Virus record (IMG/VR): IMGVR_UViG_3300020471_000004
Coordinates: 124,001-188,000 of that record
Direction: 5' to 3' (one strand)
Length of the DNA stretch: 64,000 bases
The notes beneath the pieces are model-generated. The model made no database searches and had not been told where the DNA came from. It saw only the letters and a program-made list of their open reading frames with translations. Below are positions 23,758 to 52,612 of the stretch, in pieces; position 1 is the stretch's first letter, and every line of letters starts with the position of its first letter. The position numbers and the translations under genes were made by a program.

Positions 23758-23839
23758 CTGTATTAAGTCGGTACAAAACAGTATATGTTAATACTCGCTT
23801 AATTTGTTATACTTATTAAATGTTGCGAAGAAGCGCAGC
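23755..23839 (+). promoter_or_regulatory. Class-I promoter with covariant leader hairpin
   Basis: GGTACAAAA 23770-23778, 29 nt, TGT-TATACT 23808-23813, leader ATGTTGCGAAGAAGCGCAGC 23820-23839. Confidence 0.85.
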
Positions 23840-23861
23840 ATATTATTTAGGAGCATTTATT

Positions 23862-24173
23862 ATGGCTAAGCAAGTTTCAGAAAAAACCATGAAGTTTATC
23901 GCACAACGTTTGCGTGATGTAGCAGATACTAAACCTAACTTTAACTCTGAGTTGGTTGATCCTGAAAAGGATTTCGAAAAGTACCAAGACCTGGCTTTGC
24001 TGATTATCGAACCTGATATTCACGCAGAAGGGCCTGACTTCGATTCTAAAACCAATGAGTTTTACATGGACTGGCTACAGAACGATACAGACAACTGGGC
24101 GCAGTATATAAATAACCTGCTCGGTGCAGAGTGGGGAAGAATAGCCAAGTTCGTTTCAACCCACGGTTACTAA
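23862..24173 (+). CDS. Small acidic protein, paralog of 25096-25428
   Basis: AGGAG RBS; shares YxxLAxxIxEP...NxTDNWA...GY C-terminus. Confidence 0.8.
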   Translation: MAKQVSEKTMKFIAQRLRDVADTKPNFNSELVDPEKDFEKYQDLALLIIEPDIHAEGPDFDSKTNEFYMDWLQNDTDNWAQYINNLLGAEWGRIAKFVSTHGY

Positions 24174-25095: not shown

Positions 25096-25428
25096 ATGGA
25101 CGATATTACTTTAGACGGTCACTCAGCAATTGTTAATGCTATTCTTTCAAGTTGTTCGAGAGAACTTTCTGTTAGCTACGATGACCCAAGCCTTGAAACA
25201 TCGGTTAGCGGCGCCCTTGAAAAGGCGAAACAGGATGACTACGAAGATTATAGCCAACTTGCCCAAGTTATAGTTGAACCAACGTTTACTGAAAACCAAT
25301 CAGTTATCCAAGAAGAATATGCCGAGTATATCGAGAACAATACTGATAACTGGGCAGCCTGGGTACGCCAAACTTTTGGTAACGCTTTAGGTAATCTTGC
25401 CGATGCCGTAAACGAATACGGTTATTAA
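25096..25428 (+). CDS. Small acidic protein, paralog of 23862-24173
   Basis: GGAG RBS; DYEDYSQLAQVIVEP...ENNTDNWAAW...EYGY. Confidence 0.8.
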   Translation: MDDITLDGHSAIVNAILSSCSRELSVSYDDPSLETSVSGALEKAKQDDYEDYSQLAQVIVEPTFTENQSVIQEEYAEYIENNTDNWAAWVRQTFGNALGNLADAVNEYGY

Positions 25429-25468: not shown

Positions 25469-25545
25469 TAACTTTACTAAAGTGGTACAAAACACCATAT
25501 ATACGTACCCCTGTAGTTTTGCTATACTGTATGCATGTTGTGACA
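25469..25545 (+). promoter_or_regulatory. Class-I promoter with ATGTTGTGA leader
   Basis: GGTACAAAA 25484-25492, 30 nt, TGC-TATACT 25523-25528, ATGTTGTGA at 25535. Confidence 0.8.
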
Positions 25546-25594
25546 GACAGCATACAAACTTTCGTTAAACAAACAAACTTAAAGGAAATTCAAA

Positions 25595-27439
25595 ATGGCT
25601 AAAGTTCAAACAAACGAAGCAATGGTTGGTAAGCGCATCAAACTAGAAGATGGCAGCCGTGTTAAAATCCTAGAAGCACAGGCTTCTGGTTACAAACTAT
25701 CTAACGGTGACCGATTACCTGCTCGTAAAGTTGAAAAGCGCGGTCGCAGTTTTATCGAAACTGATCTTACTATGCGTGACCTAGAAGATACAGGTGAAGG
25801 TTATGTTGTTAAGCCTGGTTCTGAGGAAGCATCACCTAAGAAATCAGCCACGCGCAATAAAACAACTGGTAAGAAGAAAACTACCAGCAAGAAAAAAGAA
25901 ACAGGTCGTACAACTCGCAACTCTAAAACCAAAACCAAAACCAAAACCAAGTCTAAGTCAAAAACAAAAGACTCGGAAGAGACGCGTACTAATCGTAAGA
26001 CTAAAACCACGCGTAACAAAAAGAAAGACGATGCCCCGTCTTCTAAAAAGACCGTTTCGCGCCGCCGTACTAAGGCGAAAGAAGAAAAGGTTGAAACTAA
26101 GCCAGCTCGTAACCAAGAAGTCGAGTTGAAAAACAAGTCTCAGATGGAAAAAATTCAAACAGCTATTCGTTTAGCTGTCGGTGAGATCTTAGCGCCTTAC
26201 ACAAACATTGATAGTCAGAGCACTTGTTTGATGGCTAATCCTCCGAAGAGCGCGTTCTCGGTAACGATTGAAGTTAAAACTTCTCTAGTTAAGCCTGAAC
26301 ACCACAGCCTAAGCTATTACAAAGCAATTGCTAAGGAAGCAGGTGCTCGAATCATTACGCTTAAACCTAATATTCAGGCAAAGATTGCAGAACGCCTTGA
26401 ACCTGAAGAGTCTGTACGTGATTCGTTTGTTTTAGAATACGGTGATATTCTTCTTGATGAAGACGGTACTACCAAGCTTGTTTATTCAGGTGTTAACGTA
26501 AGAGAAAATAAGTTTGTTCTGGTTAACATGTCTACCGAGCAAGTTATTGAAATCGGCTTATCAGGTTTTGATAGCCTAGATACTACTGGCGTAAACGTTA
26601 CAAGTCTAGGTATGACTATTGAAGAATACAACCAGGAACTTGAAAACGCTGCCGATGTTGATGATGACGAGTTTGCTATTGATTCCGATGAAGATAAAAC
26701 TCCGCTTGAATCTTTAGACTGGGACAACACTGACCACGAAACTTTAGTTGATTTGCTTTCGGATGTTTACACCGAAGAAGAGCTGATTGCTTTCGCAGAG
26801 CAAATGGACGCGTCCGAAGAAGAGCTTGAAGCACCGATTAGCGAGTTGATTGAAATGATCGTTGCAGCACAAAAAGAAGAGTCGGAAGACTTTGAAGACG
26901 CAGACGAAGAACCTGAGTCGGACGAGCTAGAGCTTGGTGATATTGAAATGGACGAAGATGATCTTGAAACAGAAGATGATCTAGACCTAGAGGACGCCGA
27001 AGACCTAGACGGTATAGAAGAAGTTGTCGAAAACAAACTTTCTATTCGTGAAATGGCCGCAGCGTTGATAGAGTCAGGTGACTATACGCCTAAAGGTTTG
27101 AAGCGCCTGTCTGATGATGAAATCGAGCAGGAGTATCAAGACCTAATCGGTGACCAGGAAGAAGAAGCTGAAGAGCTTCCGTCTCTTGAAGAAATGAAAG
27201 AGACTCTTCTGTCAGACGGTCAAGTAACACCTAAAGGCTTAAAGCGTATGGAAGACGAGGAGATTGAAAGTCTTTACATTGAAGTATACGGTGATGAAGT
27301 CGAAGACGACCAAGACGATGTAGATATGCTTTTCGATGCCGACTCTGTTGAAGACGAAAACGACCTTGACTTAGAAGGCGAAGATGACGATGAAGAAGAC
27401 CTAGATCTAGAAGGCGAGTTAGAGTCTGAATTTGAATAA
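25595..27439 (+). CDS. Polyampholyte protein: basic K/T-rich tract followed by very acidic C-terminal half with two TPKGLKR repeats
   Basis: 614 aa; KKKTTSKKK...KTKTKTKTK tract; D/E-rich tail; repeats at T498 and T545. Confidence 0.85.
   Translation: MAKVQTNEAMVGKRIKLEDGSRVKILEAQASGYKLSNGDRLPARKVEKRGRSFIETDLTMRDLEDTGEGYVVKPGSEEASPKKSATRNKTTGKKKTTSKKKETGRTTRNSKTKTKTKTKSKSKTKDSEETRTNRKTKTTRNKKKDDAPSSKKTVSRRRTKAKEEKVETKPARNQEVELKNKSQMEKIQTAIRLAVGEILAPYTNIDSQSTCLMANPPKSAFSVTIEVKTSLVKPEHHSLSYYKAIAKEAGARIITLKPNIQAKIAERLEPEESVRDSFVLEYGDILLDEDGTTKLVYSGVNVRENKFVLVNMSTEQVIEIGLSGFDSLDTTGVNVTSLGMTIEEYNQELENAADVDDDEFAIDSDEDKTPLESLDWDNTDHETLVDLLSDVYTEEELIAFAEQMDASEEELEAPISELIEMIVAAQKEESEDFEDADEEPESDELELGDIEMDEDDLETEDDLDLEDAEDLDGIEEVVENKLSIREMAAALIESGDYTPKGLKRLSDDEIEQEYQDLIGDQEEEAEELPSLEEMKETLLSDGQVTPKGLKRMEDEEIESLYIEVYGDEVEDDQDDVDMLFDADSVEDENDLDLEGEDDDEEDLDLEGELESEFE
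25925..25948 (+). repeat. (AAAACC)4 in-frame hexamer repeat
   Basis: Encodes KTKTKTKT. Confidence 0.7.
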
Positions 27440-27460
27440 GCCTGTACACCGGAGATAGAT

Positions 27461-27838
27461 ATGTCAGATCTAAAACCGATGTTTATAGGAACGTTTTATA
27501 GTCTTTTAGTCAGGTCTGCAATGTCTAGCGAGGAAGGGTATGTAACAGTACCCGACCTTTCTAAGCAGATAAACATACTACCGAATCGTGGAAACGAGCT
27601 AGGTAAAATTGTTAACCAGACGCTTAAAGAAATTGCTACGTTTGAACACAAGCATAACCGACCTATGTTAACAGCACTGGTCTGCAAACAAGACAAAGCA
27701 AGCGGTTCTTTTTACCCTAGCGATTGGTTCTATGTTTGTGCAGAGCAATTAGGCTACAATGTTCCTAAAACACCAGAAGGGAAGTTACAATTCTGGCGTG
27801 CTGAATTTGAAAAAGTTCACGCATACTGGTCTATATAG
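27461..27838 (+). CDS. Small putative winged-helix DNA-binding protein
   Basis: GGAG RBS; RPMLTALVCKQ...YPSDWF...FWRAEFEKVHAYW pattern recalls small wHTH domains. Confidence 0.55.
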   Translation: MSDLKPMFIGTFYSLLVRSAMSSEEGYVTVPDLSKQINILPNRGNELGKIVNQTLKEIATFEHKHNRPMLTALVCKQDKASGSFYPSDWFYVCAEQLGYNVPKTPEGKLQFWRAEFEKVHAYWSI

Positions 27839-27846
27839 GAGTTACT

Positions 27847-29223
27847 ATGTCTTATACTCGAGTATATGACGATGTGGATATGGATGCAATGCGCTCCTTG
27901 GTTCACGCTAGAATTTTACATCCGTCTGAATCAAAACTTGAGGGTACAGCATTGTCTGTACCTATTACACTGTTTGGTGAAGCTTACAAAAACACCAGGA
28001 CAGTAGAGCTTAGATTAAGCAAAACCTATCTAAGACAACTGGTTAATAAAGCAGCCGAAGGCTATGACCGTGCTACTTGTGAAACAATCAGCTTGTTATA
28101 CAGAGCAGGTTTAGGTTTGCCGAAATCTAAAGAATGTCATTTGCTATGGGACGTACTCCGAAGCGGGTATCAACCTAAAGTAAATGGTAAGATATTTTCA
28201 TATACAAATATGGTTTATATCTTAAAGCAACACTGGAAGATTTTGAGAGTAGAGAACAAAGATCCTAATTGGGTATACTTTAGTCCTCAAAATGATTTTT
28301 TCCGAAATCTTCTGCAACCTACGTTTAGCACTTACGTAAATGATAAGTTTGTAGCCAAGCGTAAACCTTTTGGTGTGTTTGCAAAATACGCAGGTATTGA
28401 TTGTACTCTTGTGTACAGAGCAAATTCACAAACAGGTGAAGGTACGTTTTGGGCAGCCTATGCAAAAGTACAGGACACTTTATTAAATGTCACTGCACAG
28501 GTAGCATGTTGTCCTAATATACCTAAAACTATAATTAACTCTAAGTTGAGTTCGTTTAGTCCTTTCTTTATGGTGAACGGTACATTAACTGTAAAGAATA
28601 GAGCGTTTAGAAAGCTTTCTAAATACTGGCAGCAAAATAATGTACTAGGTCTAATACGTGCAAGTCTAGACCAGGACATTTACTCGTTGGCAGAGTTTGC
28701 AGGAAGGGATTTACCTTCTAAGCATCCTTCGAAAAGCTTTGTAGATCGTTATCGCGGTAAATATCGTAAAGCAACAAAGTTTGTTGATTCGTTTAGAGGC
28801 AAACGTCCTAATCGAACCGATAGCCGTAGGTTAGAAAAGGCTCAGCATCTAATAGATACGTTTAACACCCATGCTATTGTTGTTGACCAAGCTAAAGAGC
28901 ACCGACAGGAATTAAAGCAATACGATATTGTAGATAACCTACAGTTCGTTGCGTATGACTTGTACGGATACTTATCAGAAGATTCTGATAGTTCTAGGTG
29001 CTTGCGAATACGTACCCCTTACGATAAGGTGCATAGCTTTATCAAAGAAATGGGATTCAATACAGCCGTTATGTGCAAACCTTTAAGTAAGCAAAAGGCA
29101 TGTGTTGACCGTGTAACAAGCACTGTACTTCCAGGCTTCATTATGAAAGGCTTGGTTTACAAGCTAGCTGAAAATTCAGCCGGCTCTGATTTAAACTGGG
29201 TTAAAGTTAAACTAGGAGACTAA
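27847..29223 (+). CDS. Sel1-like repeat fused to a degenerate NAD+-dependent DNA ligase adenylation domain
   Basis: KYAGIDCTLVY (motif I), NVTAQVACCPNIPKTI, FMVNGT (III), LQFVAYD (IIIa), KGLVYK (IV); no OB/Zn/HhH/BRCT domains. Confidence 0.55.
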   Translation: MSYTRVYDDVDMDAMRSLVHARILHPSESKLEGTALSVPITLFGEAYKNTRTVELRLSKTYLRQLVNKAAEGYDRATCETISLLYRAGLGLPKSKECHLLWDVLRSGYQPKVNGKIFSYTNMVYILKQHWKILRVENKDPNWVYFSPQNDFFRNLLQPTFSTYVNDKFVAKRKPFGVFAKYAGIDCTLVYRANSQTGEGTFWAAYAKVQDTLLNVTAQVACCPNIPKTIINSKLSSFSPFFMVNGTLTVKNRAFRKLSKYWQQNNVLGLIRASLDQDIYSLAEFAGRDLPSKHPSKSFVDRYRGKYRKATKFVDSFRGKRPNRTDSRRLEKAQHLIDTFNTHAIVVDQAKEHRQELKQYDIVDNLQFVAYDLYGYLSEDSDSSRCLRIRTPYDKVHSFIKEMGFNTAVMCKPLSKQKACVDRVTSTVLPGFIMKGLVYKLAENSAGSDLNWVKVKLGD

Positions 29224-29224
29224 T

Positions 29225-30625
29225 ATGTCTAATCAAGATAACCAGCAAAATACTTCTGAAAACACTAATGTAGTAGAGCCCACTTCTGTTGAAACGGTTG
29301 TAGAGCAAACAACTGAACAGGAAACTGTAAACAATACGCAGAACACAAGTTCTACCGAAACCGAATCACTTACAAAGGATAGCGAAATGAGTAGTGAAAG
29401 CGAAAAGTTACGTCAACGTCAAATCAATGCAGGTATGTCACCTACTGATCAGGCCCGCGAAGAAATGATTAAAGAGCAAGAACAAAGAACAGGCGCTCCT
29501 AATCCTGCACCTCAAGTTGAATCGACTGTGCAAGAGCCGGTTACTGTTTCTCAAACAGAAAACGTTTCTGAAAATGTTTCGTTTGAATCTGAAATGCCTG
29601 TGCAAGAAGTCGAGTTAGCTTCGGCGCGCCCAATGTTTTCTGATTTGTTTGTTCCAGATTCGATGGAACTGTACACTTCTAACATTCGTTTGCACCTGGT
29701 TATTCCTGTTGCGTCTACTAGCATTCTATCTAAGAAGGTTAAGACAGTAGAAGTTGGTGACCAAGAATTCAATATTCGTAACACCTTGGCGCGACCTGTT
29801 AAAGGTAAGCCTGCAGGTCTTATGTTTAATGCGCTAAACGAGCTGCTGTCTACCGCAGACACTTATAACAACCAGCGTTTCTATTACGCAGGTGATGCGC
29901 TTACTCTTGAAAACATGAAAAGCGGACTGTGCGCCCGTCTAACAGACTTTGTTGCAGGTCTTGATTTAGCAGGCGGTCTTTCTAATGAATCTTGGGAAGA
30001 GCAAGTAGGTTTTGCACCTAGCGTTTCAATTACTCCTAGCTTTGACAGCGATGAGCTAATTGTTTCAATGGTTGTTCCGTTTCCTCTACTTTCAATGACG
30101 CCGGATAAACTTGAAACTTCGGCACAGGTAGAAGACTTCATTGTTAAACGTATCGTTGGCGATTCTAACATCAAAGTAGATATAAGTTACGCAATCAACA
30201 CCGTCGATGCAATCATTGACGAATCTGTAAACGAATTGGTGAACGGTCTTGTTGGTGAATCGGATTACGTTCTTGCCACTGACGCGGATCTAATTAGTTT
30301 CTACACTAGCCTGGAAGAAGGCGAAGACGAAGACTTTGATTATAGCGAAGACGAAGGCGAAGATTTTGATTCAGATGAAGATTCGGACGATGACGACCTA
30401 GAATCTGAAGGTGAAGATTCAGACGATGATGACCTTGAGTTAGAAGGTGACGAAGTAGATACAATCGACCTTGGTTATGTGCCGCATAACTCGCTTGCAG
30501 GTCTTGAAGCGCAATTGCGTTATTCTAACATTGGTGACCAATCATTTATCTTGGTTAGCAAATGTGTAAACGAGCTAGAAGATTTAGACTTATCTGGCGC
30601 CGAGCAAGAAGAGTCAGAAGACTAA
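29225..30625 (+). CDS. Acidic protein with disordered N-terminus and D/E-rich tail
   Basis: 466 aa; T/E/Q/S-rich N-terminus; DEDSDDDDLE repeats. Confidence 0.8.
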   Translation: MSNQDNQQNTSENTNVVEPTSVETVVEQTTEQETVNNTQNTSSTETESLTKDSEMSSESEKLRQRQINAGMSPTDQAREEMIKEQEQRTGAPNPAPQVESTVQEPVTVSQTENVSENVSFESEMPVQEVELASARPMFSDLFVPDSMELYTSNIRLHLVIPVASTSILSKKVKTVEVGDQEFNIRNTLARPVKGKPAGLMFNALNELLSTADTYNNQRFYYAGDALTLENMKSGLCARLTDFVAGLDLAGGLSNESWEEQVGFAPSVSITPSFDSDELIVSMVVPFPLLSMTPDKLETSAQVEDFIVKRIVGDSNIKVDISYAINTVDAIIDESVNELVNGLVGESDYVLATDADLISFYTSLEEGEDEDFDYSEDEGEDFDSDEDSDDDDLESEGEDSDDDDLELEGDEVDTIDLGYVPHNSLAGLEAQLRYSNIGDQSFILVSKCVNELEDLDLSGAEQEESED

Positions 30626-30636
30626 AAACTGTAAAC
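30625..30636 (+). promoter_or_regulatory. Class-II motif AAAACTGTAAAC
   Basis: Exact 12-mer overlapping the upstream stop. Confidence 0.55.
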
Positions 30637-30694
30637 TTTATTTGAATATACTAATTAAGTAGTTCAAGATTAATTTTGTATTTGGAGAAACATC

Positions 30695-31219
30695 ATGCGT
30701 AAAACAAAAGCACCGGCAAAGAAAGGCGCTGCTCGTAAAGGTAAGAAAACAGGAACAGCAGTTGCTCGTCCTAGCGGTGCAACACGCAATAGCCGTCTTG
30801 CTAAGTTTGAAGGCAAAATCAACAAGCTTGGTACAGACAAAGTTTCAACCAAAGCTTTAGCGGGAATGAAAGCTTCGGTAGTTGTATCGGCACCTGGTCA
30901 AATCGCTCAGATTATCGGTTACATGGTAGCCGCTGATGAAGACACTGTTACCTTGCGTACTAACAAGAAATCAGGTTCTTCTAAGCCTGTAATCAAAGTT
31001 ATCCCACGCAAACGTATTGCAGCATCTATCGGTGCACCTGGTGACAACTGTATCCTTTGGGTACAAGAGCAAAAAGAAATGTTTGTTCTTAAAGAAACAA
31101 CTGTAAAGGTTGAAGGCAACACTGCTTTCGTTACAGACCTTAAAACAGGCGGTGACGTTATTGAGTTCCCTCTTAACAATCCGCTTGTTGATGTAGCAAT
31201 CGAGTATATGGAAGACTAA
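30695..31219 (+). CDS. Basic-tailed protein with possible Sm/SH3-like beta-barrel
   Basis: GGAG RBS; MRKTKAPAKKGAARKGKK tail; VVVSAPG..IIGYMVAADEDTVTL...VIPRKRIAAS. Confidence 0.75.
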   Translation: MRKTKAPAKKGAARKGKKTGTAVARPSGATRNSRLAKFEGKINKLGTDKVSTKALAGMKASVVVSAPGQIAQIIGYMVAADEDTVTLRTNKKSGSSKPVIKVIPRKRIAASIGAPGDNCILWVQEQKEMFVLKETTVKVEGNTAFVTDLKTGGDVIEFPLNNPLVDVAIEYMED

Positions 31220-31240
31220 GGTCTTCCTTCTCACAAAACA

Positions 31241-31252
31241 AAAACTGTAAAC
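31241..31252 (+). promoter_or_regulatory. Class-II motif AAAACTGTAAAC
   Basis: Exact 12-mer in the intergenic gap. Confidence 0.55.
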
Positions 31253-31303
31253 ATATTTCGTAACATAACGTTAGACTAAAAACACCTTATTAAGGATACA
31301 ATA

Positions 31304-32350
31304 ATGCGTAAATCAAAATCAGCCGCTAAAAAGACTCAAACTAATGCAGCAGTAGAGCTTCTGAAAACCCTTCTTGTCGGTCTTCAAGATGCTGCTAACG
31401 ATGGTGACGAGTCTTGTGCTGCGATTCTAGAACATGCTGGTGTTACCGCTGATTCTCAGGCAGCCTTAGAAGAAGCCGAAGAAGATGAAGATGAAGATGA
31501 CGAAGATGAAGACGTTGACCTCGAAGAGCTTTCTCTTAAAGAGCTGAAAGCACTTTGTAAAGAGCGTGGAATCAAAGTACCTCGCGGTGCTGACGAAGAC
31601 GCCTTAATCGAGCTTCTTGAGGAAGAAGAAGACGAGGAAGACGAAGAAGACGAGGCTGAGGAAGAAGAAGGTCTTGACGAAGAAGAGCGCGAAGAGCTAA
31701 TCGCTGACCTTGTTGCTGCCAAGATCAAAGGTCTTACAAAAGCCAAGTTGAAGAAAATGTCGGACGAGCAACTGCAAGAGCTTGAAGAAGAGCACTTGGG
31801 CGAAGACGAAGACGAAGACGAAGCTGAAGAAGACGGTGATGACTTGGAAGAGCTTTCTCTTAAAGAGCTTAAAGCGCTTTGTAAAGAACGCGGCATTAAA
31901 GTACCACGTGGTGCCGATGAAGAAAAGCTAATCGAGCTTCTTGAAGATGAAGAAGACGAAGAAGAAGGTGACGAAGAAGACGAGGAAGACGGTGACGATG
32001 TTGACCTTGAAGAGCTTTCTCTTAAAGAACTTAAAGCCCTTTGCAAAGAACGTGGTATTAAAGTTCCGCGCGGCGCAGATGAAGAAGATCTAATCGAGCT
32101 TCTTGAAGACGAAGACGAAGAAGAAGACGAAGAAGACGAGGAAGACGAAGACGATATTCCAGATCTTGATTCAATGTCTGACAAAGAGCTTATCGCTTTA
32201 GCCAAAGAGCTTAAACTTGTTAAAGGCGCAAAAGCTAAAAAGCTGAGTGTTGAAGATGCGCTTGAACTTCTTGCTGACCACTACGATATTGAAATCGAAG
32301 CCGAAGACGAAGAAGATGAAGACGAAGACGAGTGGGGCGAAGACGACTAA
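31304..32350 (+). CDS. Extremely acidic protein with three or four HeH (Rho-N/LEM/SAP-like) modules
   Basis: 3x DLEELSLKELKALCKERGIKVPRGADExxLIELLE plus degenerate LDSMSDKELIALAKEL, separated by poly-D/E linkers. Confidence 0.85.
   Translation: MRKSKSAAKKTQTNAAVELLKTLLVGLQDAANDGDESCAAILEHAGVTADSQAALEEAEEDEDEDDEDEDVDLEELSLKELKALCKERGIKVPRGADEDALIELLEEEEDEEDEEDEAEEEEGLDEEEREELIADLVAAKIKGLTKAKLKKMSDEQLQELEEEHLGEDEDEDEAEEDGDDLEELSLKELKALCKERGIKVPRGADEEKLIELLEDEEDEEEGDEEDEEDGDDVDLEELSLKELKALCKERGIKVPRGADEEDLIELLEDEDEEEDEEDEEDEDDIPDLDSMSDKELIALAKELKLVKGAKAKKLSVEDALELLADHYDIEIEAEDEEDEDEDEWGEDD
31517..32107 (+). repeat. Three 105-nt coding direct repeats (31517-31621, 31841-31945, 32003-32107)
   Basis: Near-identical GAAGAGCTTTCTCTTAAAGA cores. 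Confidence 0.9.
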
Positions 32351-32447
32351 TAGTTGATGTCTTTCGAATTTTAATTTTTTAACTTTTACATTGCAGGGAA
32401 GTTGTTAACAGTAAACACTTCCCTTTATAACAAACTGGAGAACAAAA

Positions 32448-32963
32448 ATGGCTAAGACAGTCACTCTTAAAGCTACAAACTTTAATCAAGCGGGAAAGAA
32501 AGTAGAAGCAGTATTGAAAACTGTTGCAAGTACTAGCGCTATCATCGAAGCTCTTGAAAAAGCTGCGGATGCAACCGAAGACAAGAAAGCGACTCGCGCG
32601 TTTACTTCACAAGCTAACAAGCTAACTAAACTTGTTGAGCGCCAAGAAAAAGCAATTGCAGATCTGCAAGGTAAGCTAGTTGTTGAAGGCGAAGAAGCTC
32701 CGGCGAAAGCAAAAGGCAAAGCGAAAGCTGAAAAAGCTCCAGCGAAGGCAAAAGGCAAAGCGAAAGCAAAAGCAAAAGCCGAAAAGCCTGCCGCTAAAAC
32801 CAAAGCAACCAAGGCAAAAGGCAAAGCGAAGGCAAAAGCCGAAAAGCCTGCTGCTAAAACCAAAGCAAAGGGTAAAGCAAAGGCAAAAGCTACTGCAAAA
32901 CCTGCACGTAAACCTCGCAGCAAAAAGACTGCACCAAAAGGTGAATTCGATTTCGAAGCTTAG
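32448..32963 (+). CDS. Histone H1-like K/A-rich DNA-binding protein
   Basis: GGAG RBS; repeats AKAKGKAKAKAEKPAAKTK; ends with acidic FDFEA. Confidence 0.8.
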   Translation: MAKTVTLKATNFNQAGKKVEAVLKTVASTSAIIEALEKAADATEDKKATRAFTSQANKLTKLVERQEKAIADLQGKLVVEGEEAPAKAKGKAKAEKAPAKAKGKAKAKAKAEKPAAKTKATKAKGKAKAKAEKPAAKTKAKGKAKAKATAKPARKPRSKKTAPKGEFDFEA

Positions 32964-33004: not shown

Positions 33005-33040
33005 GGGCCGTTAGTTTATACTGCGGCCCTTTATTCGTTT
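33005..33040 (+). terminator. Intrinsic terminator
   Basis: GGGCCG/CGGCCC stem followed by TTTATTCGTTTTT. Confidence 0.55.
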
Positions 33041-33053
33041 TTAAAGGTATTTT

Positions 33054-33934: not shown

Positions 33935-33943
33935 GGAAGTTTG

Positions 33944-35974
33944 ATGGCTTTACGAAAGAGAAAAACAACTACAGCCAAGACCTCAGCGAAGAAAGGCAAA
34001 AACAAAGCTGGTTATGATGAAGATAGCATTGACGTACAGGAAGGTCTAAAAGGTATTCGCCTTAACCCCGGTATGTATCTTGCTGCTCTGGGTAATCGAA
34101 TGGTGTTTCGAATGGTAAAAGAAGTTGTAGATAATTTCTATGACGAATACGCCGCTGGTCGAAACACAGGGGGTGAGGTAATCTACGACCCCAAGACTAA
34201 CGCCTGTATTGTAGCTGACTATGCTCAAGGTATTCCTGTCGGATTAAAACAGACTGAACACGAAGGTAAGGTAAGTACACTTACTCTTATTCTTACAAAA
34301 GTTCACGCAGGTGGTAAGTTTAATGACAAGGCTTACAAAACCTCAAGTGGTACGCACGGTGTTGGTGTTTCTGCGGTAAACGCTGTTTCAAAAGTTCTTG
34401 AAGTATGGACACACCGTGATGGAAGTTGGTACTATCAAAAGTTTAACACTGGTATCCCTGCTGCTAAAGTCAAGAAACTTTCTAAGACGCCTACCGAATT
34501 CAAAAAGATGGGCCTCGCAGAAAAGCGTTTTGACAAGTATGGTACTATTATTCGATTTGTTCCTGACCAGACGGTTGTGTCCGAAGACGCTGCTCGTGGT
34601 AGTCGTAAAACAGAAGACAAACTTACCAAAGCGATTCTGGAAGAAAGCACTACAGAGCGTTGGTTAAAAACGCTTGCCTTATTGAACAAAAATTTTAAGA
34701 TCACATTCAATCATATTGGTAGTGAACCTAAAGTTTTCTTAAACAAGAAAGGTCTAGATTTCCTTATTAGTGAACGCATCAAAGAAAACGAGCTAGGTGC
34801 AGTTATCAAAAAACCTTTTTCGTATTCAGACGGCGAACTTGATTGTGTTGTTACTTGGACTGACCAGCCTGATGACGTACACTTTACATCGTTTGTTAAC
34901 TCGTCTGCTACTTTATCTCATGGTACTCACGTTGAAGGTTTCCGTTCGGCGTTACAAAAAGCAATTAAGCCTCACTTAACAGAGCGCGATAAAAAAGCCA
35001 AGTTCACGGTACATGACCTAATGATTGGTGCGTGTGGTATTCTAAACTTCCGAATGAACTCTGCTATATATGATTCACAGGTCAAAGATAAGTTGGTATC
35101 TAAAGTATCAAAAATCATTGACGATAAACTTAGCGAACCCTTATTGCTGTGGTTTAAAGAAAATCCTCGCGTTGCTAAAAACATAATCAAGAAGGCTACT
35201 ACTGCAAACAGTGCCCGTGAATCTTTGAAAAAGGTAATGCGTTCACTAACAGAAGTTAGAAAAGGCAGTCGTGGTAAGTTGCCTGAAAACCTTACTGAGG
35301 CCCCTAACGTTAAGCCTGATAAAAGAGAAATCTATATAGTAGAAGGTGACTCGGCAGGCGGTACAGCTAAAGACGCCCGTAATGATAACCAAGAGATATT
35401 AAGATTATCTGGTAAGCCTTTGAATGCGCTTAAAGCAGGACTGGACAAATTGCTTACCAGCAAGGCAATAGTTAATATTATTATATCGCTGGGTATTGAC
35501 CCTAGTTCTCTTGATGTTAACTCAGAGAATCCTAAGTTTAGTGTTGATAAGTTGCGTTGTCGTGACGTTATACTTTTAAGTGATCCTGACCCTGATGGTT
35601 CACACATCAATACTCTTATTCTTAGTCTATTCTTCCGACTTATGCCAGACCTTATTAAGCAAGGTCGTTTGTATGTTATTGAAGCCAAGCTGTACAGTGC
35701 TTTGTATAAAGGTAAACTTTACACAGGCGATACGTTTGAAGAATGTTATTCTCAAATGCCCCAGACACCTGATGCTAAACGTAGCGTTATACGCATCAAA
35801 GGTTGGGGAGAAATTAACGCAGATATGATGGACCCTATTGCGTTTGATCCAGAGTTACGCACTATACGCCGTATTACTTGGGTCGATGACCCGGATAAAA
35901 TACAACACTTCCGAAACATTGCTGCTGAATCAAGCGCAAGCCGACGAGAACTTCTAGGTCTCAAGGAAGCTTAA
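33944..35974 (+). CDS. gyrB: Type IIA DNA topoisomerase subunit B (GyrB/ParE-like)
   Basis: GHKL motifs EVVDN, DYAQGIP, HAGGKF, GTHGVGVSAVNA; TOPRIM VEGDSAGG, GKPLN, DPDPDGSHI; RIKGWGE. Confidence 0.95.
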   Translation: MALRKRKTTTAKTSAKKGKNKAGYDEDSIDVQEGLKGIRLNPGMYLAALGNRMVFRMVKEVVDNFYDEYAAGRNTGGEVIYDPKTNACIVADYAQGIPVGLKQTEHEGKVSTLTLILTKVHAGGKFNDKAYKTSSGTHGVGVSAVNAVSKVLEVWTHRDGSWYYQKFNTGIPAAKVKKLSKTPTEFKKMGLAEKRFDKYGTIIRFVPDQTVVSEDAARGSRKTEDKLTKAILEESTTERWLKTLALLNKNFKITFNHIGSEPKVFLNKKGLDFLISERIKENELGAVIKKPFSYSDGELDCVVTWTDQPDDVHFTSFVNSSATLSHGTHVEGFRSALQKAIKPHLTERDKKAKFTVHDLMIGACGILNFRMNSAIYDSQVKDKLVSKVSKIIDDKLSEPLLLWFKENPRVAKNIIKKATTANSARESLKKVMRSLTEVRKGSRGKLPENLTEAPNVKPDKREIYIVEGDSAGGTAKDARNDNQEILRLSGKPLNALKAGLDKLLTSKAIVNIIISLGIDPSSLDVNSENPKFSVDKLRCRDVILLSDPDPDGSHINTLILSLFFRLMPDLIKQGRLYVIEAKLYSALYKGKLYTGDTFEECYSQMPQTPDAKRSVIRIKGWGEINADMMDPIAFDPELRTIRRITWVDDPDKIQHFRNIAAESSASRRELLGLKEA

Positions 35975-37064: not shown

Positions 37065-38672
37065 ATGAGAAAGAGAAAAGCTTCCTCAGATTCAGAAGAT
37101 ACCAAACGCCGTCTGGTGCGCAGACGAAAAACAGGCGTTACAAAATCTAAAACAAAAAAGAAATCTTTAGGTAAGCTTGCACAGAAAGCCGCTAAGCCTG
37201 ATTACAACACAAACATCGAAGGTGCAGATGAAATTACCTTGGATGATTTTGCTGGTGCAAGTCTTACACACTACGGATCATATGTTGTAGAAGAACGTGC
37301 TGTACCTGATTACCGCGATGGTCTTAAACCTGTTCACAGATACATACTTTGGGCAATGCATGACCTAGGTATCAATTCTAGATCAGGTTACAAAAAGTCA
37401 GCTCGTACTATTGGTGATGTTCTTGGTAAGTATCACCCGCATGGTGACCAGTCTGCTTACGGTGCTATGTCTACTCTTGTTAACTACAAGTTGAATCCTC
37501 AACTTGTTCAAGGTCAAGGTAACTGGGGTACTCCTGTAGACCCTCATGCTGCAATGCGTTATACCGAGGCCCGATTAAGTGCGTTCAGTGATATTTTCTT
37601 GCTAGATAAGCACTACTTGAAAACTGTTCCTAAAATCGATAACTTTGACCAAACTTTAAAGGTACCGCTGTATTTGCCTGCTACGTTACCTACACTTATG
37701 ATAACAGGTAGCTCTGGAATCGGTTTTGGTATAGCTTCATCGAATCCTCCGTTTGACGTAGACGGTGTGTACAAGATGGCTGTAAGTAGCTTGAAGGCGT
37801 TTGCTGCTAAAAAGAAAGTTACTTATAAAACCTGCATGAAGAACCTGACTATTGATTATGGTTTCGGGTGTACGCAGGTTAGTGGTGATGATGAAATGGA
37901 AGACCTGTTCAAGACAGGTAAAGCTTCTATTAAATTTGTACCTGAAATAAAAGTTGACCCCAAGACCAAGACTATCGAGATAGTTTCATTCGCGCCTGGC
38001 TTTAGAAGTGTAAGTGGTATACAGAAAAAGCTAGACAAGATTGCAGGCTGGGACGGTGTTAGCAGAGCTGGTGACAACTCAGGTGCTAAAAACAAAAAAG
38101 CAGGAAAGCTAGGTGCATATTATTATGTAACTGCTTCGCGTGGAACATCTGAGCAGGCTTTGTATGACTTGGCTGACCGAGTATACAAGGAAGTTACAGG
38201 CTCTGAGAGTTACGATTTAGGATTTACTGTTCGTAACCATGAAGATCGTAACCAGTTTATAAAAAGCGGCTACCCTGCTTACTTTAATAACTGGGCCAAG
38301 TATCGATTCATACTTGAGCACAAAGCTATTGCTATACATATCGAAGAGCGAAAGGCAGCTATTGCCTTGCTTGAATTAAAAGTGTTGGCAGTAGACAAGC
38401 GTGATATAATTATGCAGGTTCTTAAATCTAAAACAAAGGACTTAGATGCTACGCTTGCTAAGAAACTAAGAATACCTCTTGAAGATGCCAAGACTATTCT
38501 GAACCTACAGACTAGACGACTAGCAGCTTTAGAGAAACCTCAACTTCTGGCAGAGATTAAAGACCTCAAGAGTCAGATACGAGAGTTACAAAAGGATGAT
38601 GCAAATCCTTTGAAACGAATCTTGCGAATCACCAAGGAACAGTATGATACGTACCGCAAGCGTATCAAATAA
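37065..38672 (+). CDS. gyrA: Type IIA DNA topoisomerase subunit A (GyrA/ParC-like), lacking the C-terminal beta-pinwheel
   Basis: RAVPDYRDGLKPVHR, KKSARTIGDVLGKYHPHGD, AAMRYTEARL (catalytic Y166); ends at 535 aa. Confidence 0.95.
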   Translation: MRKRKASSDSEDTKRRLVRRRKTGVTKSKTKKKSLGKLAQKAAKPDYNTNIEGADEITLDDFAGASLTHYGSYVVEERAVPDYRDGLKPVHRYILWAMHDLGINSRSGYKKSARTIGDVLGKYHPHGDQSAYGAMSTLVNYKLNPQLVQGQGNWGTPVDPHAAMRYTEARLSAFSDIFLLDKHYLKTVPKIDNFDQTLKVPLYLPATLPTLMITGSSGIGFGIASSNPPFDVDGVYKMAVSSLKAFAAKKKVTYKTCMKNLTIDYGFGCTQVSGDDEMEDLFKTGKASIKFVPEIKVDPKTKTIEIVSFAPGFRSVSGIQKKLDKIAGWDGVSRAGDNSGAKNKKAGKLGAYYYVTASRGTSEQALYDLADRVYKEVTGSESYDLGFTVRNHEDRNQFIKSGYPAYFNNWAKYRFILEHKAIAIHIEERKAAIALLELKVLAVDKRDIIMQVLKSKTKDLDATLAKKLRIPLEDAKTILNLQTRRLAALEKPQLLAEIKDLKSQIRELQKDDANPLKRILRITKEQYDTYRKRIK

Positions 38673-44737: not shown

Positions 44738-45595
44738 ATGGACGACAATAATCCTTACGGCTACCTACAAGAAGACGGTCCTTTAAAAGACGTTCCGTAT
44801 AGTGTGATACATCGCTTTATACAGAGTCGTCCTCCTGGGTTCCTTGAAATGAACACTGTTCCTAAAGGCATGGACAATACTGTTTCTTACGTAGATGCAT
44901 TGCCAGTCATCGTAGAAGACAATGCTGTTGTGTACGTTGACGAACAAAACAAAAAGCTAATAGAAGGCCTCTTAGCAAACAGTACTCCTAAAGAAGACGC
45001 TTATCTTAATCTTAATGAGATACGCAGTCGTATAGAGACTCGCAAGTCTACTCACCAAAGATCTAGCATAGCACCTAAGCCTAGTTCTTTGAGGGAGGAG
45101 TCACCTAACGACACCGCGGTAGAGAACGTTATACCTATAGAGAAGTCTGACGTTCAAAAAAGCTTTGATGCTACCGAGATACTAAGCAAACAAATGGGAG
45201 ACCTAAGCGTAGAGCATTTGAACCTTATACTTAGCTTTGACAATGCTTCTAGTTATCTAGAGGCATTTGCTAAGGATGCTTTAGGCATTCAAGGTGAAAT
45301 AAGCGTAGACGAGCATCCTTTTAATTTCATTAGACAGATGTGTAGTGTGAACCTAGTAAGTTCCTACGCAGATAAACTAGCTATGCCTGATGAATACAAA
45401 AAGTACTTTATGGAAAAGACCATAGACTACTTTGCAGGACTAGCTCAACGTGAATCCGATGCTGCTTTAAAGATGGAACTTCTACGCCGCACAAACAATT
45501 CCCAACGGTCTAAAGGTACAGTGAGTTCAGAACGATATGACGATACCGAAACACCTAGTTCCGCACACGGTGCTATTGTAAAGCGTAATAAATGA
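44738..45595 (+). CDS. Hypothetical protein upstream of terL
   Basis: 285 aa; ATGA overlap with terL. Confidence 0.75.
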   Translation: MDDNNPYGYLQEDGPLKDVPYSVIHRFIQSRPPGFLEMNTVPKGMDNTVSYVDALPVIVEDNAVVYVDEQNKKLIEGLLANSTPKEDAYLNLNEIRSRIETRKSTHQRSSIAPKPSSLREESPNDTAVENVIPIEKSDVQKSFDATEILSKQMGDLSVEHLNLILSFDNASSYLEAFAKDALGIQGEISVDEHPFNFIRQMCSVNLVSSYADKLAMPDEYKKYFMEKTIDYFAGLAQRESDAALKMELLRRTNNSQRSKGTVSSERYDDTETPSSAHGAIVKRNK

Positions 45596-48457: not shown

Positions 48458-48679
48458 ATGTCTAAAGCTTTTTTCAACCCGTTAGACCACGTAGAAGCTA
48501 GTACGGTATCAGCTCCCCAGCAAGGTATAGAGTCTAACTCTAAAGCTATGGTCAATGATGATCCTAGTAAATGTCCCAAATGCAGCGGCGCCATGAGTGT
48601 AAGTTCTATTTTAGATAGACAGGAATCTGTTTACTACTGTGGTAAATGCCGTGTAACTAACCCTATGTTGGCTGAATAA
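48458..48679 (+). CDS. Small Zn-ribbon protein
   Basis: CPKC...CGKC; AAGGAG RBS. Confidence 0.7.
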   Translation: MSKAFFNPLDHVEASTVSAPQQGIESNSKAMVNDDPSKCPKCSGAMSVSSILDRQESVYYCGKCRVTNPMLAE

Positions 48680-51855: not shown

Positions 51856-52151
51856 TGGATTTAGAGAAACGTAAACAGTTAAGTGACTGGTACGCTAAAG
51901 CATTCGACTTAGACTCTGAAATAGATTGGACTCAAGACACGTATCGAATTAACTTAGACGGTTTTGATCGCCAATCTAAAGTAAAACTAATGCAAGGTAT
52001 TGTTAGCAGTGTAGGCGATGCTGTTTACGCTCAACAAAAAATTGCACCAAACGACCCGGAGGTAAGCTATTTGTTTTACTTCCATACACTAACTGTACCA
52101 AATACCGTGATACTAGAGAACCTATACGCGGTACATTCTGAGGATTTATAA
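51855..52151 (+). CDS. Hypothetical protein
   Basis: 98 aa; TAATG coupling. Confidence 0.7.
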   Translation: MDLEKRKQLSDWYAKAFDLDSEIDWTQDTYRINLDGFDRQSKVKLMQGIVSSVGDAVYAQQKIAPNDPEVSYLFYFHTLTVPNTVILENLYAVHSEDL

Positions 52152-52612
52152 TGGATACTGAATTATTCCAATCAATCGTTTTGGATGAAGAAGACAACAA
52201 CATAATGGTTGTTACTAATAGCTCTCTTGTTGACTTTACTTTCAGTTTGTTTGACCGTTTCGTTTCAGAAGTTCTTGATAACCAAGAAACGATTGAAGAC
52301 GATGACTCGGGCGAAGAGCTAGTTGCATCTGTTATCAGTTATGCCGAAGCTATTATCGATGATGCCTTGGTAGAAGAGCTTACGCCTACTGTTACGCAAG
52401 TTATTCAAGTGGGCAGCACTTTAATCATTGTTGTGGAACTTGATCAAGAAATTATCGAGTACCTTGACGAAGGCTATGCAGATACCGACAGTGTAGCTGC
52501 TGTTATTTTCGGCGATAGTGATTCGGAAGAAGATGAATCTGATGAAGATGACGATGAATCTGACGAAGATGACGATGAAGATGAAGATGAAGACGAATGG
52601 GACGTAGACTAA
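52151..52612 (+). CDS. Very acidic protein
   Basis: 153 aa; poly-D/E tail; no Lys and a single Arg. Confidence 0.75.
   Translation: MDTELFQSIVLDEEDNNIMVVTNSSLVDFTFSLFDRFVSEVLDNQETIEDDDSGEELVASVISYAEAIIDDALVEELTPTVTQVIQVGSTLIIVVELDQEIIEYLDEGYADTDSVAAVIFGDSDSEEDESDEDDDESDEDDDEDEDEDEWDVD

Follow-up and report, generated by a model that had tools for sequence, protein, structure and literature searches.

A run of extremely acidic and extremely basic genes in the virus record IMGVR_UViG_3300020471_000004 raises the question of whether such proteins form a functional unit and whether that unit acts on DNA. The window analyzed here comprises 64,000 nucleotides of this record (positions 124,001 to 188,000). 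An initial sequence-only reading had pointed to four strongly charged proteins and a basic-tailed barrel protein within 7.4 kb, followed about 1 kb later by topoisomerase II, and had proposed a genome-organizing or phase-separating replication compartment distinct from the phiKZ chimallin shell. The observation was confirmed and found to be larger than first described, as a cassette of seven neighboring genes for highly charged and largely disordered proteins was shown to be conserved in order and design across a group of jumbo phages. The proposed interpretation was only partly supported.

Gene Content and Domain Organization

All of the open reading frames were found on the + strand (Table 1), and the topoisomerase II large subunit starts 978 nt after p171. 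Two interleaved genes, p125 and p458, as well as two further helix-loop-helix modules in the acidic tail of p614, had been missed in the sequence-only reading. Six of the seven proteins have no Pfam domain, and none has a solved relative, apart from the single Sel1 repeat in p458.

Table 1. Features of the cassette and its surroundings, in window coordinates. Proteins are named by length in residues.
Feature	Position	Strand	Description
Class-1 promoter of the p614 unit	25484-25560	+	GGTACAAAACA box, 22-23 nt, TTTGCTATACT (sigma-70-type extended -10), then a conserved leader
p614	25595-27439	+	Di-block polyampholyte, 27% D/E, net about -82; small N-domain (aa 1-75), K/T/S/R-rich basic linker (aa 81-160, net +28), central globular part (about aa 180-345), acidic tail (aa 345-614) with two type-B helix-loop-helix modules (aa 486-515 and 533-566; nt 27050-27139 and 27191-27292)
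p125	27461-27838	+	Small neutral protein
p458	27847-29223	+	Basic (pI 9.6) protein, one Sel1-like repeat (aa 57-118; nt 28015-28200)
p466	29225-30625	+	Acidic protein, 22% D/E, 5% K/R; polar and acidic N-region, globular core (about aa 130-380), poly-D/E tract (aa 360-420), short C-terminal element
Class-2 promoter motif	30627-30638	+	AAAACTGTAAAC, 68 nt upstream of p174
p174	30695-31219	+	Basic disordered N-tail (aa 1-30; first 20 residues net +9), two short helices, predicted all-beta core (aa 60-174) of the Sm/SH3-like small-barrel class with an inserted beta-subdomain
Class-2 promoter motif	31243-31254	+	AAAACTGTAAAC, 61 nt upstream of p348
p348	31304-32350	+	Hyper-acidic protein, 43% D/E, net about -109; basic tip plus helix-turn-helix N-domain (aa 1-50); three SAP/HeH type-A modules (nt 31517-31627, 31841-31951, 32003-32113); one type-B module (nt 31688-31801); one type-C module (nt 32174-32284); poly-D/E linkers throughout; acidic Trp tip (DEDEWGEDD)
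Hairpin	32395-32424	+	Followed by UUUAU, between p348 and p171; possibly a partial terminator or attenuator
p171	32448-32963	+	27% K/R, net about +29; helical coiled-coil-like N-half (aa 1-80), K/A/P repeat tail (about aa 85-160, net about +27), acidic-aromatic tip GEFDFEA
Intrinsic terminator	33005-33043	+	G+C-rich hairpin followed by a U-run, preceded by a second hairpin
Topoisomerase II large subunit	33941-35974	+	Context; basic N-terminal tail. The small subunit at 37065-38672 also has a basic tail and a class-1 promoter

The three near-identical modules in p348 were found to be genuine SAP/HeH modules. At the DNA level they appear as 201-nt repeats of 75-80% identity, and the protein matches Pfam SAP at E 2e-9 (37.3 bits against a cut-off of 23.9, in three stretches), as well as Ish1 (3e-9) and Rho_N (3e-7). 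Between the copies there are 12-15 synonymous and 3-5 non-synonymous codon differences out of 38, with no amino acid change in the 26-residue core, indicating that the repeats are under purifying selection. However, these Pfam-grade modules are lineage-specific inserts rather than the conserved heart of the system. The PaBG and Lu11 orthologues consist of a small N-domain plus pure poly-D/E with no HeH, and most relatives carry a different module that Pfam does not call SAP. In addition, a net charge of -109 makes direct DNA binding by p348 unlikely, and protein binding is more plausible.

A different, private helix-loop-helix module is shared by p348 and p614. An HMM of two modules from L034, a 311-kb metagenomic contig, found only these two proteins in the whole proteome, with the hits to the p614 modules at E 4e-11 and 1.6e-5. 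Otherwise, p614 matches phrog_33433, a family of unknown function, and has no solved relatives.

The description of p171 as histone H1-like holds for composition only. No linker-histone globular domain was detected in the Pfam search, and no linker-histone or phasin family hit or solved relative was found; instead, the protein has a coiled coil and a conserved acidic Phe tip. p174 has a confidently predicted all-beta small-barrel core with a basic tail, in agreement with the sequence-only reading. A profile of six p458 family members hits Sel1-repeat proteins (6onw, E 2e-6), suggesting an adaptor; a ligase lead from the ESM Atlas was rejected, because the putative motif-I lysine is not conserved, and p458 is therefore not considered an active ligase. 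No family hit was obtained for p125, and no Pfam, PHROG, or PDB relatives were found for p466.

Conservation of the Cassette

Within this genome alone, the clustering is only marginal: 18 of 235 proteins of at least 100 aa are this charged, and the occurrence of four in seven consecutive genes gives a permutation P of about 0.08. What lifts the cassette above chance is its conservation, in order and in charge design, in the five other complete genomes examined (NCTB, Dickeya AD1 and JA11, PaBG, and Lu11) and in three metagenomic contigs (L033, L034, and L035), at a depth where topoisomerase II is only about 43% identical. Synteny with NCTB is full, with p125 and p458 being 57% and 46% identical, respectively, to their NCTB counterparts. 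The same order and charge architecture was observed in AD1, PaBG, Lu11, and L034, in the examined parts of JA11 (p614-like, p458-like, p174-like, and K/A genes), and in the partial contigs L033 and L035. Positional equivalents of p125 are 126 aa long in AD1 and 114 aa in L034, and the p466 family aligns across eight genomes with lengths from 289 to 1007 aa. The p174 profile hits all five relatives, but not the outgroup Motura. The p614 N-domain is conserved in NCTB, AD1, and JA11 (profile E about 1e-39), but its profile did not score in PaBG and Lu11, where the family assignment of the p614-like, hyper-acidic, and K/A proteins rests on position and architecture.

The conserved core of the cassette is a pair of adjacent genes. 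One encodes the hyper-acidic protein, for which the N-domain pattern is conserved in eight genomes and the orthologues of p348 contain 44-67% D/E. An acidic aromatic tip recurs in most of these orthologues, as Trp in four genomes and Phe in two, whereas Lu11 has none. The next gene encodes the coiled-coil protein with the K/A/P repeat tail, and an alignment of six genomes revealed an invariant Phe in its acidic tip; the L034 protein ends in DDDDFDFED. The neighbors of the cassette are always topoisomerase II, sigma factor, SSB, UvsX/RecA, or DnaB.

Promoters, Terminators, and Expression

The cassette splits into two transcription regimes. The p614-p125-p458-p466 genes lie behind the class-1 promoter, of which eight intergenic copies were found, all on the + strand at genome 128-161 kb; these also precede the small topoisomerase II subunit (window 36984) and five other genes. 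Its timing (early or middle, by host RNAP) is inferred from the -10 element only. The class-2 motif, which is phage-specific, occurs 21 times in the genome against about 0.4 expected; 15 copies are intergenic and typically lie 38-70 nt before a start codon. It precedes p174, p348, a DNA polymerase subunit, and an exonuclease, and matches the annotated middle/late promoter of Lu11, where it precedes the hyper-acidic gene (two copies), SSB, and DNA polymerase I. The motif is conserved upstream of the hyper-acidic gene in seven of eight genomes, often in two copies. In contrast, the canonical motif is absent upstream of the p171 gene in all eight genomes, and the window has only a CAGTAAA variant, so that p171 is probably co-transcribed with p348. 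The hairpin between the two genes is kept in the centroid structure (-12.3 kcal/mol), but the spacer as a whole does not differ from shuffles (z -0.27), and support for this element is weak. The terminator after p171 is strong (-32.8 kcal/mol, z -5.1), with 0 of 200 shuffles folding as well.

These data place the cassette in a DNA-replication setting rather than in the virion, although the timing is inferred from motif sharing. No cassette product, that is none of PaBG gp123-gp131 (with gp124 the counterpart of p171 and gp125 that of p348), is among the 14 abundant virion proteins of that phage; the underlying analysis, however, used Coomassie bands and tryptic MALDI, and would probably miss poly-D/E and K/A proteins. 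The MCP, a virion protein, and a scaffold-like coiled coil lie 125 kb away from the cassette. Exact-match contigs over p466, p174, p348, and p171, but not over p125 or p458, were detected in two marine metatranscriptome libraries; this evidence is weak, and the contigs could be carried-over DNA.

A Putative Role in Organizing Phage DNA

The best available reading, held tentatively (probability about 0.4), is that this polyelectrolyte cassette of Lupandier-group jumbo phages acts inside the infected cell during the DNA-replication phase, providing a DNA-coating protein with a polyanionic chaperone and scaffolds. Conserved gene order, conserved charge design, the two transcription regimes, and the terminator were established by the analysis, whereas the mechanism, including DNA binding, chromatin-like compaction, and phase separation, is inferred. 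In this view, p171 would oligomerize through its coiled coil, and its K/A/P tail would coat and compact double-stranded DNA non-specifically, as bacterial and eukaryotic H1-type tails do. p348, presumably made from the same transcript, would be the polyanionic counter-partner, binding the K/A tail electrostatically as prothymosin-alpha or nucleoplasmin binds linker histones; this would keep p171 soluble and off RNA and ribosomes, and set how tightly it holds DNA. The acidic Trp tip of p348 and the acidic Phe tip of p171 might be short docking motifs of the kind that SSB tails use to recruit partner proteins. p614, with its basic block followed by an acidic block, and p466 would add multivalent acidic scaffolding, and the module shared by p614 and p348 would bind a common partner. 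p174 may be a second nucleic-acid binder, and p458 an adaptor. Together they would form a DNA-associated, charge-driven assembly that organizes the replicating phage genome. Neither experiment nor homology links any cassette protein to DNA binding, and prediction of the complex gave no answer. A phase-separated compartment is possible, but is held with lower confidence and by inference only. The genome lacks chimallin, PhuZ, and the phiKZ-type RNAP, so that, as the sequence-only reading had proposed, anything it builds differs from the phiKZ shell.

Alternative Explanations

A role in host take-over and counter-defense is less likely but possible. The hyper-acidic proteins (p348, p614, and p466) might be DNA mimics or decoys that soak up host nucleoid proteins, restriction enzymes, or other DNA-sensing defenses, while the K/A protein compacts or silences the host chromosome. 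Extreme acidity with regularly spaced modules resembles the general design of phage DNA mimics of the Ocr, Arn, and Gp46 types, the p614 promoter could be used early by host RNAP, and the strong variation between lineages (in p466 family length and in the modules swapped or lost in the p348 family) is expected for genes in an arms race. Repeat-length variants also occur between marine strains. However, no similarity to Ocr or other mimic families was detected (Atlas score 0.32), known mimics are folded whereas these proteins are mostly low-complexity, and the pair is co-regulated with replication genes rather than with the earliest genes. The strict conservation of the adjacent acidic and basic pair, with conserved tips, across hosts as different as Pseudomonas, Dickeya, Erwinia, and marine bacteria argues for a phage-internal partner rather than a host-specific target. 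A somewhat less favored possibility, which overlaps with the main reading rather than excluding it, is a replisome or transcription hub, in which p171 and p348 use SSB-like tips to recruit or hand over specific enzymes (polymerase, topoisomerase II, helicase, or RNAP with the phage sigma factor) and the charged tracts act as flexible tethers. The tips are consistent with this, the basic tails of the topoisomerase II subunits could dock to acidic tracts, and the one phage LLPS precedent is a transcription-factor hub (SPO1 Gp27; PMC13401047). Nevertheless, no partner was identified, and the size of the charged tracts exceeds what a tether needs.

Capsid-internal or packaging functions, with the K/A protein packaged as a DNA counter-ion and the acidic proteins serving as prohead scaffold or placeholder proteins displaced by DNA, are unlikely. 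Proheads of T4-type and phiKZ-type phages contain both very acidic and very basic internal proteins, terminase and portal genes lie 13-16 kb downstream on the same strand, and the PaBG virion analysis was insensitive to such proteins. However, gp126, gp127, gp128, and gp131 have ordinary tryptic sites and were still not among the PaBG virion proteins. The MCP, the virion protein, and the scaffold-like charged coiled coil form a separate module at genome 18.7-25.3 kb, a separate protamine-like Arg-rich protein sits in the structural block, the promoter is shared with DNA polymerase and exonuclease genes, and in PaBG and Lu11 the cassette adjoins sigma factor, SSB, and the recombinase. Least likely is the absence of any joint function, with fast-evolving, disordered, charged proteins merely happening to be neighbors. 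The marginal clustering and the scarcity of recognizable domains would fit, but the gene order and per-gene charge design kept in eight genomes or contigs, the private module shared by two members, the conserved promoter, and the purifying selection on the repeats speak against it.

Relation to Known Systems

The pairing of a K/A/P-rich polycationic tail with a poly-D/E polyanion recalls eukaryotic linker histone H1 and its acidic chaperones, prothymosin-alpha and nucleoplasmin, and several members have an acidic tract ending in an aromatic anchor. The expected logic is that the cation compacts DNA while the anion chaperones and tunes it. This likeness is compositional, and homology is not supported: neither a winged-helix globular H1 domain nor a nucleoplasmin core was found in the Pfam search, p171 has a coiled coil and its own acidic Phe tip, and the two partners are encoded as adjacent phage genes. 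Bacterial H1-like proteins with K/A/P repeats (Chlamydia Hc1/Hc2, Pseudomonas AlgP, and the PhaF C-terminal domain) likewise have a repetitive tail of variable repeat number, which in PhaF is preceded by a coiled-coil or amphipathic N-terminal part, and the repeat-length polymorphism between strains parallels Hc2. No sequence family match was found, and a conserved acidic Phe tip and an obligatory hyper-acidic neighbor gene are not features of those proteins.

SAP/HeH/LEM/Rho_N helix-extended-helix modules are common at the ends of phage proteins, as PHROG hits indicated, but those of p348 are embedded in poly-D/E, making DNA binding doubtful. For p174, the predicted fold class and size match Hfq/Sm/SH3-like small beta-barrels with appended basic tails, many of which bind RNA or DNA. 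SPO1 Gp27 condensates and the phiKZ chimallin nucleus are both phage-made intracellular organizations of DNA transactions; the cassette shows no relation to Gp27, and SPO1 LLPS is driven by a modular transcription factor (PMC13401047), not by a polyanion and polycation pair.

The C-terminal acidic tips of E. coli SSB and of T7 gp2.5 and gp4, which serve as protein-recruitment motifs, are similarly short acidic peptides with an aromatic anchor at or near the C-terminus, although here the tips sit on disordered polyelectrolytes without an OB-fold. The SSBs of this phage group carry block-polyampholyte tails, and those of PaBG and Lu11 end in the same acidic Trp tip that is found in p348 orthologues. 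Basic tails are also carried by topoisomerase II, terminase, and portal.

Conservation of the cassette across the phage group

The window covers bases 124001-188000 of a 232,692-bp virus record, whose nearest public relative is Phage NCTB (topoisomerase II 72% identical), followed by PaBG, Lu11, and the Erwinia and Dickeya jumbo phages at about 44%. These form the "Lupandier" group of PMC7412058. No close DNA relatives of the region were found by megablast against phage records. All of the open reading frames named in the sequence-only reading were found to exist, with the charge properties ascribed to them, and the observation on which that reading rested is confirmed and extended. Two further genes lie between those it had named: p125, and the basic p458. 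Within this genome alone, the density of charged proteins is only marginally unusual (P about 0.08).

All seven proteins have collinear orthologues in NCTB. In Dickeya phage AD1 the same order recurs, with a p614-like protein plus a basic paralogue that has the same N-domain, p125-like and p458-like proteins, a 1007-aa acidic protein, a p174-like protein, a 48% D/E protein, and a K/A/P repeat protein. The second, basic paralogue of the p614 N-domain protein (gp313) is present in both AD1 and JA11, and the expanded p466 counterpart of these phages has several extra acidic tracts and helical modules. A profile of the p174 family hit one gene in each of NCTB, AD1, JA11, PaBG, and Lu11, and in PaBG (gp131 to gp123) and Lu11 (gp157 to gp166) the neighbours of this gene again follow the same order and charge pattern. 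In PaBG and Lu11, however, the assignment of the p614-like, hyper-acidic, and K/A proteins rests on position and architecture, because the p614 N-domain profile did not score there. The outgroup Motura has neither the p174 nor the p458 family.

An exhaustive search revealed only 24 cluster representatives of the p174 family among 1.84 billion proteins. In all three metagenomic contexts that were opened, the acidic protein lies upstream, and the hyper-acidic protein downstream, of the p174-like gene, and the K/A gene follows wherever the contig reaches it (metagenomic contigs L034 and L033). L034, a 311-kb contig, runs on into topoisomerase II. Two hits to p174 (P0008 and P0017) are CnaB-type repeat surface proteins and the match is spurious, and a word-indexed search with p174 returned nothing. 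Scans of IMG/VR with p458, and with its alignment, found no relatives, and a metagenome scan returned only a 100% identical contig. Related marine strains (DNA run X2, 90-95% identical) carry a 6-nt insertion in the p348 linker and an 18-nt deletion in the p171 K/A repeats, indicating that repeat length is polymorphic in nature. The phage or close kin is present in many marine and coral-reef metagenomes.

Architecture of the conserved gene pair

The invariant core of the cassette is a gene pair. The first gene encodes a hyper-acidic protein with a basic tip, a short helix-turn-helix N-domain, poly-D/E, and, in most members, an acidic aromatic tip, which reads DEDEWGEDD in p348, DDEWDEDED in L034, EGEWEDD in L033, DEDDWDDEA in NCTB, and EEDFD in PaBG. 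The second gene encodes a protein with a helical N-half, a K/A/P repeat tail, and an acidic Phe tip, in which the Phe is invariant in six genomes. p174 and p348 begin with nearly the same DNA and peptide (MRKTKAPAKK and MRKSKSAAKK; 78% DNA identity over 32 nt), and most cassette proteins in all of the genomes start with MAK/MRK followed by a basic tip.

p348 matches the about 35-residue helix-extended-helix profile of the SAP/HeH domain (Pfam PF02037) in three stretches (E 2e-9, 37.3 bits against a cut-off of 23.9). These Pfam-grade modules are lineage-specific, and a net charge of about -109 argues against direct DNA binding by p348. PaBG gp125 and Lu11 gp164 are 67% D/E with no module at all, whereas NCTB, AD1, and L034 carry a different helix/basic-loop/helix module (type B) that Pfam does not recognise as SAP. 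The type-B module is shared with the acidic tail of p614, where it likewise falls outside the Pfam SAP profile. A hidden Markov model built from two L034 modules found only p614 (E 4e-11 and 1.6e-5), NCTB p614, and p348 among all proteins of the genome. The three SAP copies in p348 differ at 12-15 synonymous codons, with no change in the 26-residue core; each copy is therefore under purifying selection, and the idea that the three modules are a recent duplication was rejected on the basis of these synonymous differences.

The D/E content of p348 is 43%, and that of its orthologues 44-67%, a long acidic tract of the kind found in nucleoplasmin- and prothymosin-type chaperones, but no nucleoplasmin family hit was obtained. 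p171, with 27% K/R overall, has a K/A/P-rich basic tail like that of linker histones H1/H5 (net about +27 over aa 85-160, with tandem DNA repeats), and the same holds in six genomes. However, p171 gave no hit to the winged-helix globular domain (Pfam Linker_histone) at E up to 0.1, and no NCBIfam or Pfam hit to the phasin domain of PhaF/PhaI-type proteins. Its N-half is predicted to be helical and coiled-coil-like. Profile searches of PDB with the p614, p466, and K/A families hit only acidic low-complexity tracts or, for p171, a weak helix.

p458 carries a single Sel1-like repeat. Its family profile hit Sel1/TPR-like helical repeats in PDB (6onw, E 2e-6; 6deh, 3.6e-5; 8sxq, 2e-4) over aa 57-118. 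An ATP-dependent RNA/DNA ligase nucleotidyltransferase assignment, suggested by ESM Atlas features with a score of only 0.81, was rejected, since the motif-I lysine (KxxG), invariant in such ligases, is K in three members, R in Lu11, and absent in AD1 and JA11, and no ligase hit was found in Pfam or PDB. p174 is only a putative member of the Sm/Hfq small beta-barrels, a class defined by a five-strand bent barrel with Sm1/Sm2 motifs that forms rings. For p174, Foldseek searches of a good structural model against PDB and AFDB clusters found nothing significant; a single-sequence AF2 model, which reached a pLDDT of only 37, was discarded. A complex prediction of p174 with the p348 N-domain and p171 scored 0.00 and is not used as evidence.

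Transcriptional organization

A sigma-70 consensus scan of the region found fewer sites than shuffled sequences do, and the promoters were instead identified by motif sharing, from which two classes emerged. Class 1 consists of a GGTACAAAACA box, 22-23 nt, TTTGCTATAAT (a TGnTATAAT-type -10 element), and then a conserved transcribed leader (CATGTTGTGAAGAAGCACAGC-like), which could be a regulatory RNA element. It has 8 intergenic copies, all confined to genome 128-161 kb, and precedes p614, which heads the tightly packed p614-p125-p458-p466 unit, and the small topoisomerase II subunit. Two small acidic paralogues that lie just upstream of the cassette, and share a C-terminal motif (…NTDNWA…YGY), each have their own class-1 promoter; NCTB has one copy.

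Class 2, AAAACTGTAAA(C/T), occurs 21 times against about 0.4 expected, and 15 of these copies are intergenic, typically 38-70 nt before a start. It precedes p174, p348, a DNA polymerase subunit, and an exonuclease. Class 2 is the same motif that the Lu11 record annotates as a middle/late promoter, and in Lu11 it stands twice before the hyper-acidic gene, and also before SSB and DNA polymerase I. The motif is shared with Lu11, NCTB, the Dickeya phages, and metagenomic relatives, and is conserved upstream of the hyper-acidic gene in 7 of 8 genomes. By inference only, it is probably read with the phage sigma factor. Upstream of the K/A gene it never occurs in canonical form. The two genes are therefore probably one transcript, closed by a strong terminator (z -5.1).

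Exact-match contigs in two marine metatranscriptome libraries cover p466, p174, p348, and the start of p171, but not p125 or p458. These contigs provide only weak support for transcription, because DNA carry-over is not excluded. Read depth over the GAA/GAC-rich tracts in sequencing runs is dominated by other organisms and was ignored, and only exact-match contigs were used.

Comparison with phage nucleus, head, and DNA-mimic proteins

No homologue of ChmA (phiKZ gp54), PhuZ, or the phiKZ-type RNAPs was detected: tblastn and phmmer searches of the whole genome with phiKZ gp54, gp39, gp55, gp71, and gp74 gave a best E of 0.14. The cassette is also not encoded beside the head genes. The MCP module lies 125 kb away, at genome 18.7-25.3 kb, and has its own scaffold-like charged coiled coil. 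None of PaBG gp123-131 is among the 14 abundant virion proteins, although the method was insensitive to such proteins, and the Lu11 GenBank record, which does not flag virion proteins detected by mass spectrometry, says nothing about virion content. The head-gene Pfam models Peptidase_S77 and Gp23 gave no hits anywhere and were uninformative. A protamine-like protein of 227 aa (34% K/R) with tandem RKPxSG repeats lies inside the structural gene block, and is a better candidate for a packaged DNA counter-ion than p171. No Pfam ocr hit was found, and the Atlas score for p466 was 0.32, so that no sequence or fold match to the Ocr-type DNA mimics was obtained.

Proposed function

The interpretation offered in the sequence-only reading, a candidate phage chromatin or condensate system of an acidic HeH scaffold, an H1-like protein, and polyampholytes, is partly supported. 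It is right that this is a linked, DNA-phase, non-chimallin system of polyelectrolytes, but it is wrong to centre the system on HeH, and "H1-like" holds for composition only. The analysis itself establishes the conservation, the architecture, the shared module, the shared promoter, and the neighbourhood of replication genes. Everything beyond this, including chromatin or condensate function and any binding of DNA or of partner proteins, is inferred. In the favoured model, p171 would coat and compact DNA through its oligomerising coiled coil and polycationic tail, while p348, in this view made from the same message, would be its polyanionic chaperone and tuner. The Phe and Trp tips would be docking motifs, p614 and p466 would add multivalent acidic scaffolding, p174 would be a second nucleic-acid binder, and p458 an adaptor. 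This model is held tentatively, with a probability of about 0.4.

Among the alternatives, host take-over or a decoy function appears unlikely, as does a specific enzyme-recruitment hub, which overlaps with the favoured model and is given slightly less weight. A role as capsid-internal proteins is more doubtful still, and the absence of any joint function is the least likely of these. If the function is nonetheless decoy or counter-defence, the cassette would define a new class of disordered DNA mimics.

A more far-reaching possibility, also considered unlikely but compatible with the evidence, is that the cassette, together with the block-polyampholyte tail of the phage SSB and the basic tails on topoisomerase II and other DNA enzymes, builds a membrane-less and shell-less replication compartment by complex coacervation. 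The polyanions (p348, p614, and p466) and polycations (p171, the p174 tails, and the DNA-enzyme tails) would condense with phage DNA, and clients would be admitted by charge and by the short Trp and Phe tips. This would be a second, chimallin-independent way for jumbo phages to make a nucleus-like zone. The only precedent for phase separation in phage development that was found is the very recent report on SPO1 Gp27 (2026; PMC13401047), and neither the 2026 jumbo-phage review nor the comparative-genomics paper mentions condensates or histone-like proteins for this group.

Jumbo phages are known to compartmentalise replication with a protein shell (chimallin), but most jumbo phages lack it. The cassette is a concrete and conserved candidate for how such phages organise a 230-280-kb genome in the cell, and it is experimentally tractable, because PaBG grows on P. 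aeruginosa PAO1 and AD1/JA on Dickeya solani. It pairs a linker-histone-like polycation with a prothymosin- or nucleoplasmin-like polyanion, a design so far associated with eukaryotic chromatin. If the pair compacts and releases DNA, or forms coacervates, it would show that charge-driven chromatin-chaperone logic evolved independently in bacterial viruses, and would provide a minimal two-gene system for studying it.

Charged tails and acidic tips elsewhere in the genome

Coordinates of features described in this and the preceding parts. L003, L007, L008, L021, and L022 denote sequence records of the genomes named in each row.
Feature	Genome	Coordinates	Strand
Class-1 promoter motif starts	this phage	window 4554, 4705, 5882, 17570, 23771, 25000, 25485, 36984	
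Class-2 promoter motif	this phage	window 22097, 30627, 31243, 53481 (and 17 further sites in the genome)	
Two small acidic paralogues	this phage	window 23820-24173 and 25096-25428	
Near-identical starts of p174 and p348	this phage	window 30692-30723 and 31301-31332	
Length variants in the p348 linker and p171 repeats	related marine strains	window 31839 and 32702	
Both topoisomerase II subunits, large terminase, and portal	this phage	window 33941-35974, 37065-38672, 45592-47799, 48679-50550	
153-aa acidic protein	this phage	window 52151-52612	
Protamine-like protein	this phage	genome 88848-89531 (L008:2849-3532)	-
Phage sigma factor	this phage	genome 116696-117748	
gp32-like SSB	this phage	genome 117785-119026, outside the window (L007:10386-11627)	
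SSB, gp117	PaBG	L022:948-2159	-
SSB, gp176	Lu11	L021:14543-15826	
Basic p614 N-domain paralogue (gp313) and 1007-aa p466 counterpart	Dickeya phage AD1	L003:15721-16953 and L003:19086-22109	

The gp32-like SSB of this phage group has a C-terminal tail of about 150 aa, made of 4-5 alternating K/R/S-rich and poly-D/E blocks, which is a block polyampholyte. The PaBG and Lu11 SSBs, whose tails are striking block polyampholytes, end in AWDDDDE and DWDDDE, the same acidic Trp tip as that of the hyper-acidic cassette protein, whereas the SSB of this genome ends basic. Both topoisomerase II subunits and the large terminase carry basic N-terminal tails, and the portal carries a basic C-terminal tail; genome-wide, 14 proteins have N-terminal, and 12 have C-terminal, tails of net charge +7 or more. 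Just after the portal region, a protein with 37% D/E and 1% K/R, for which no family hit was found, ends in DEDEDEWDVD, the same acidic Trp tip as that of p348.
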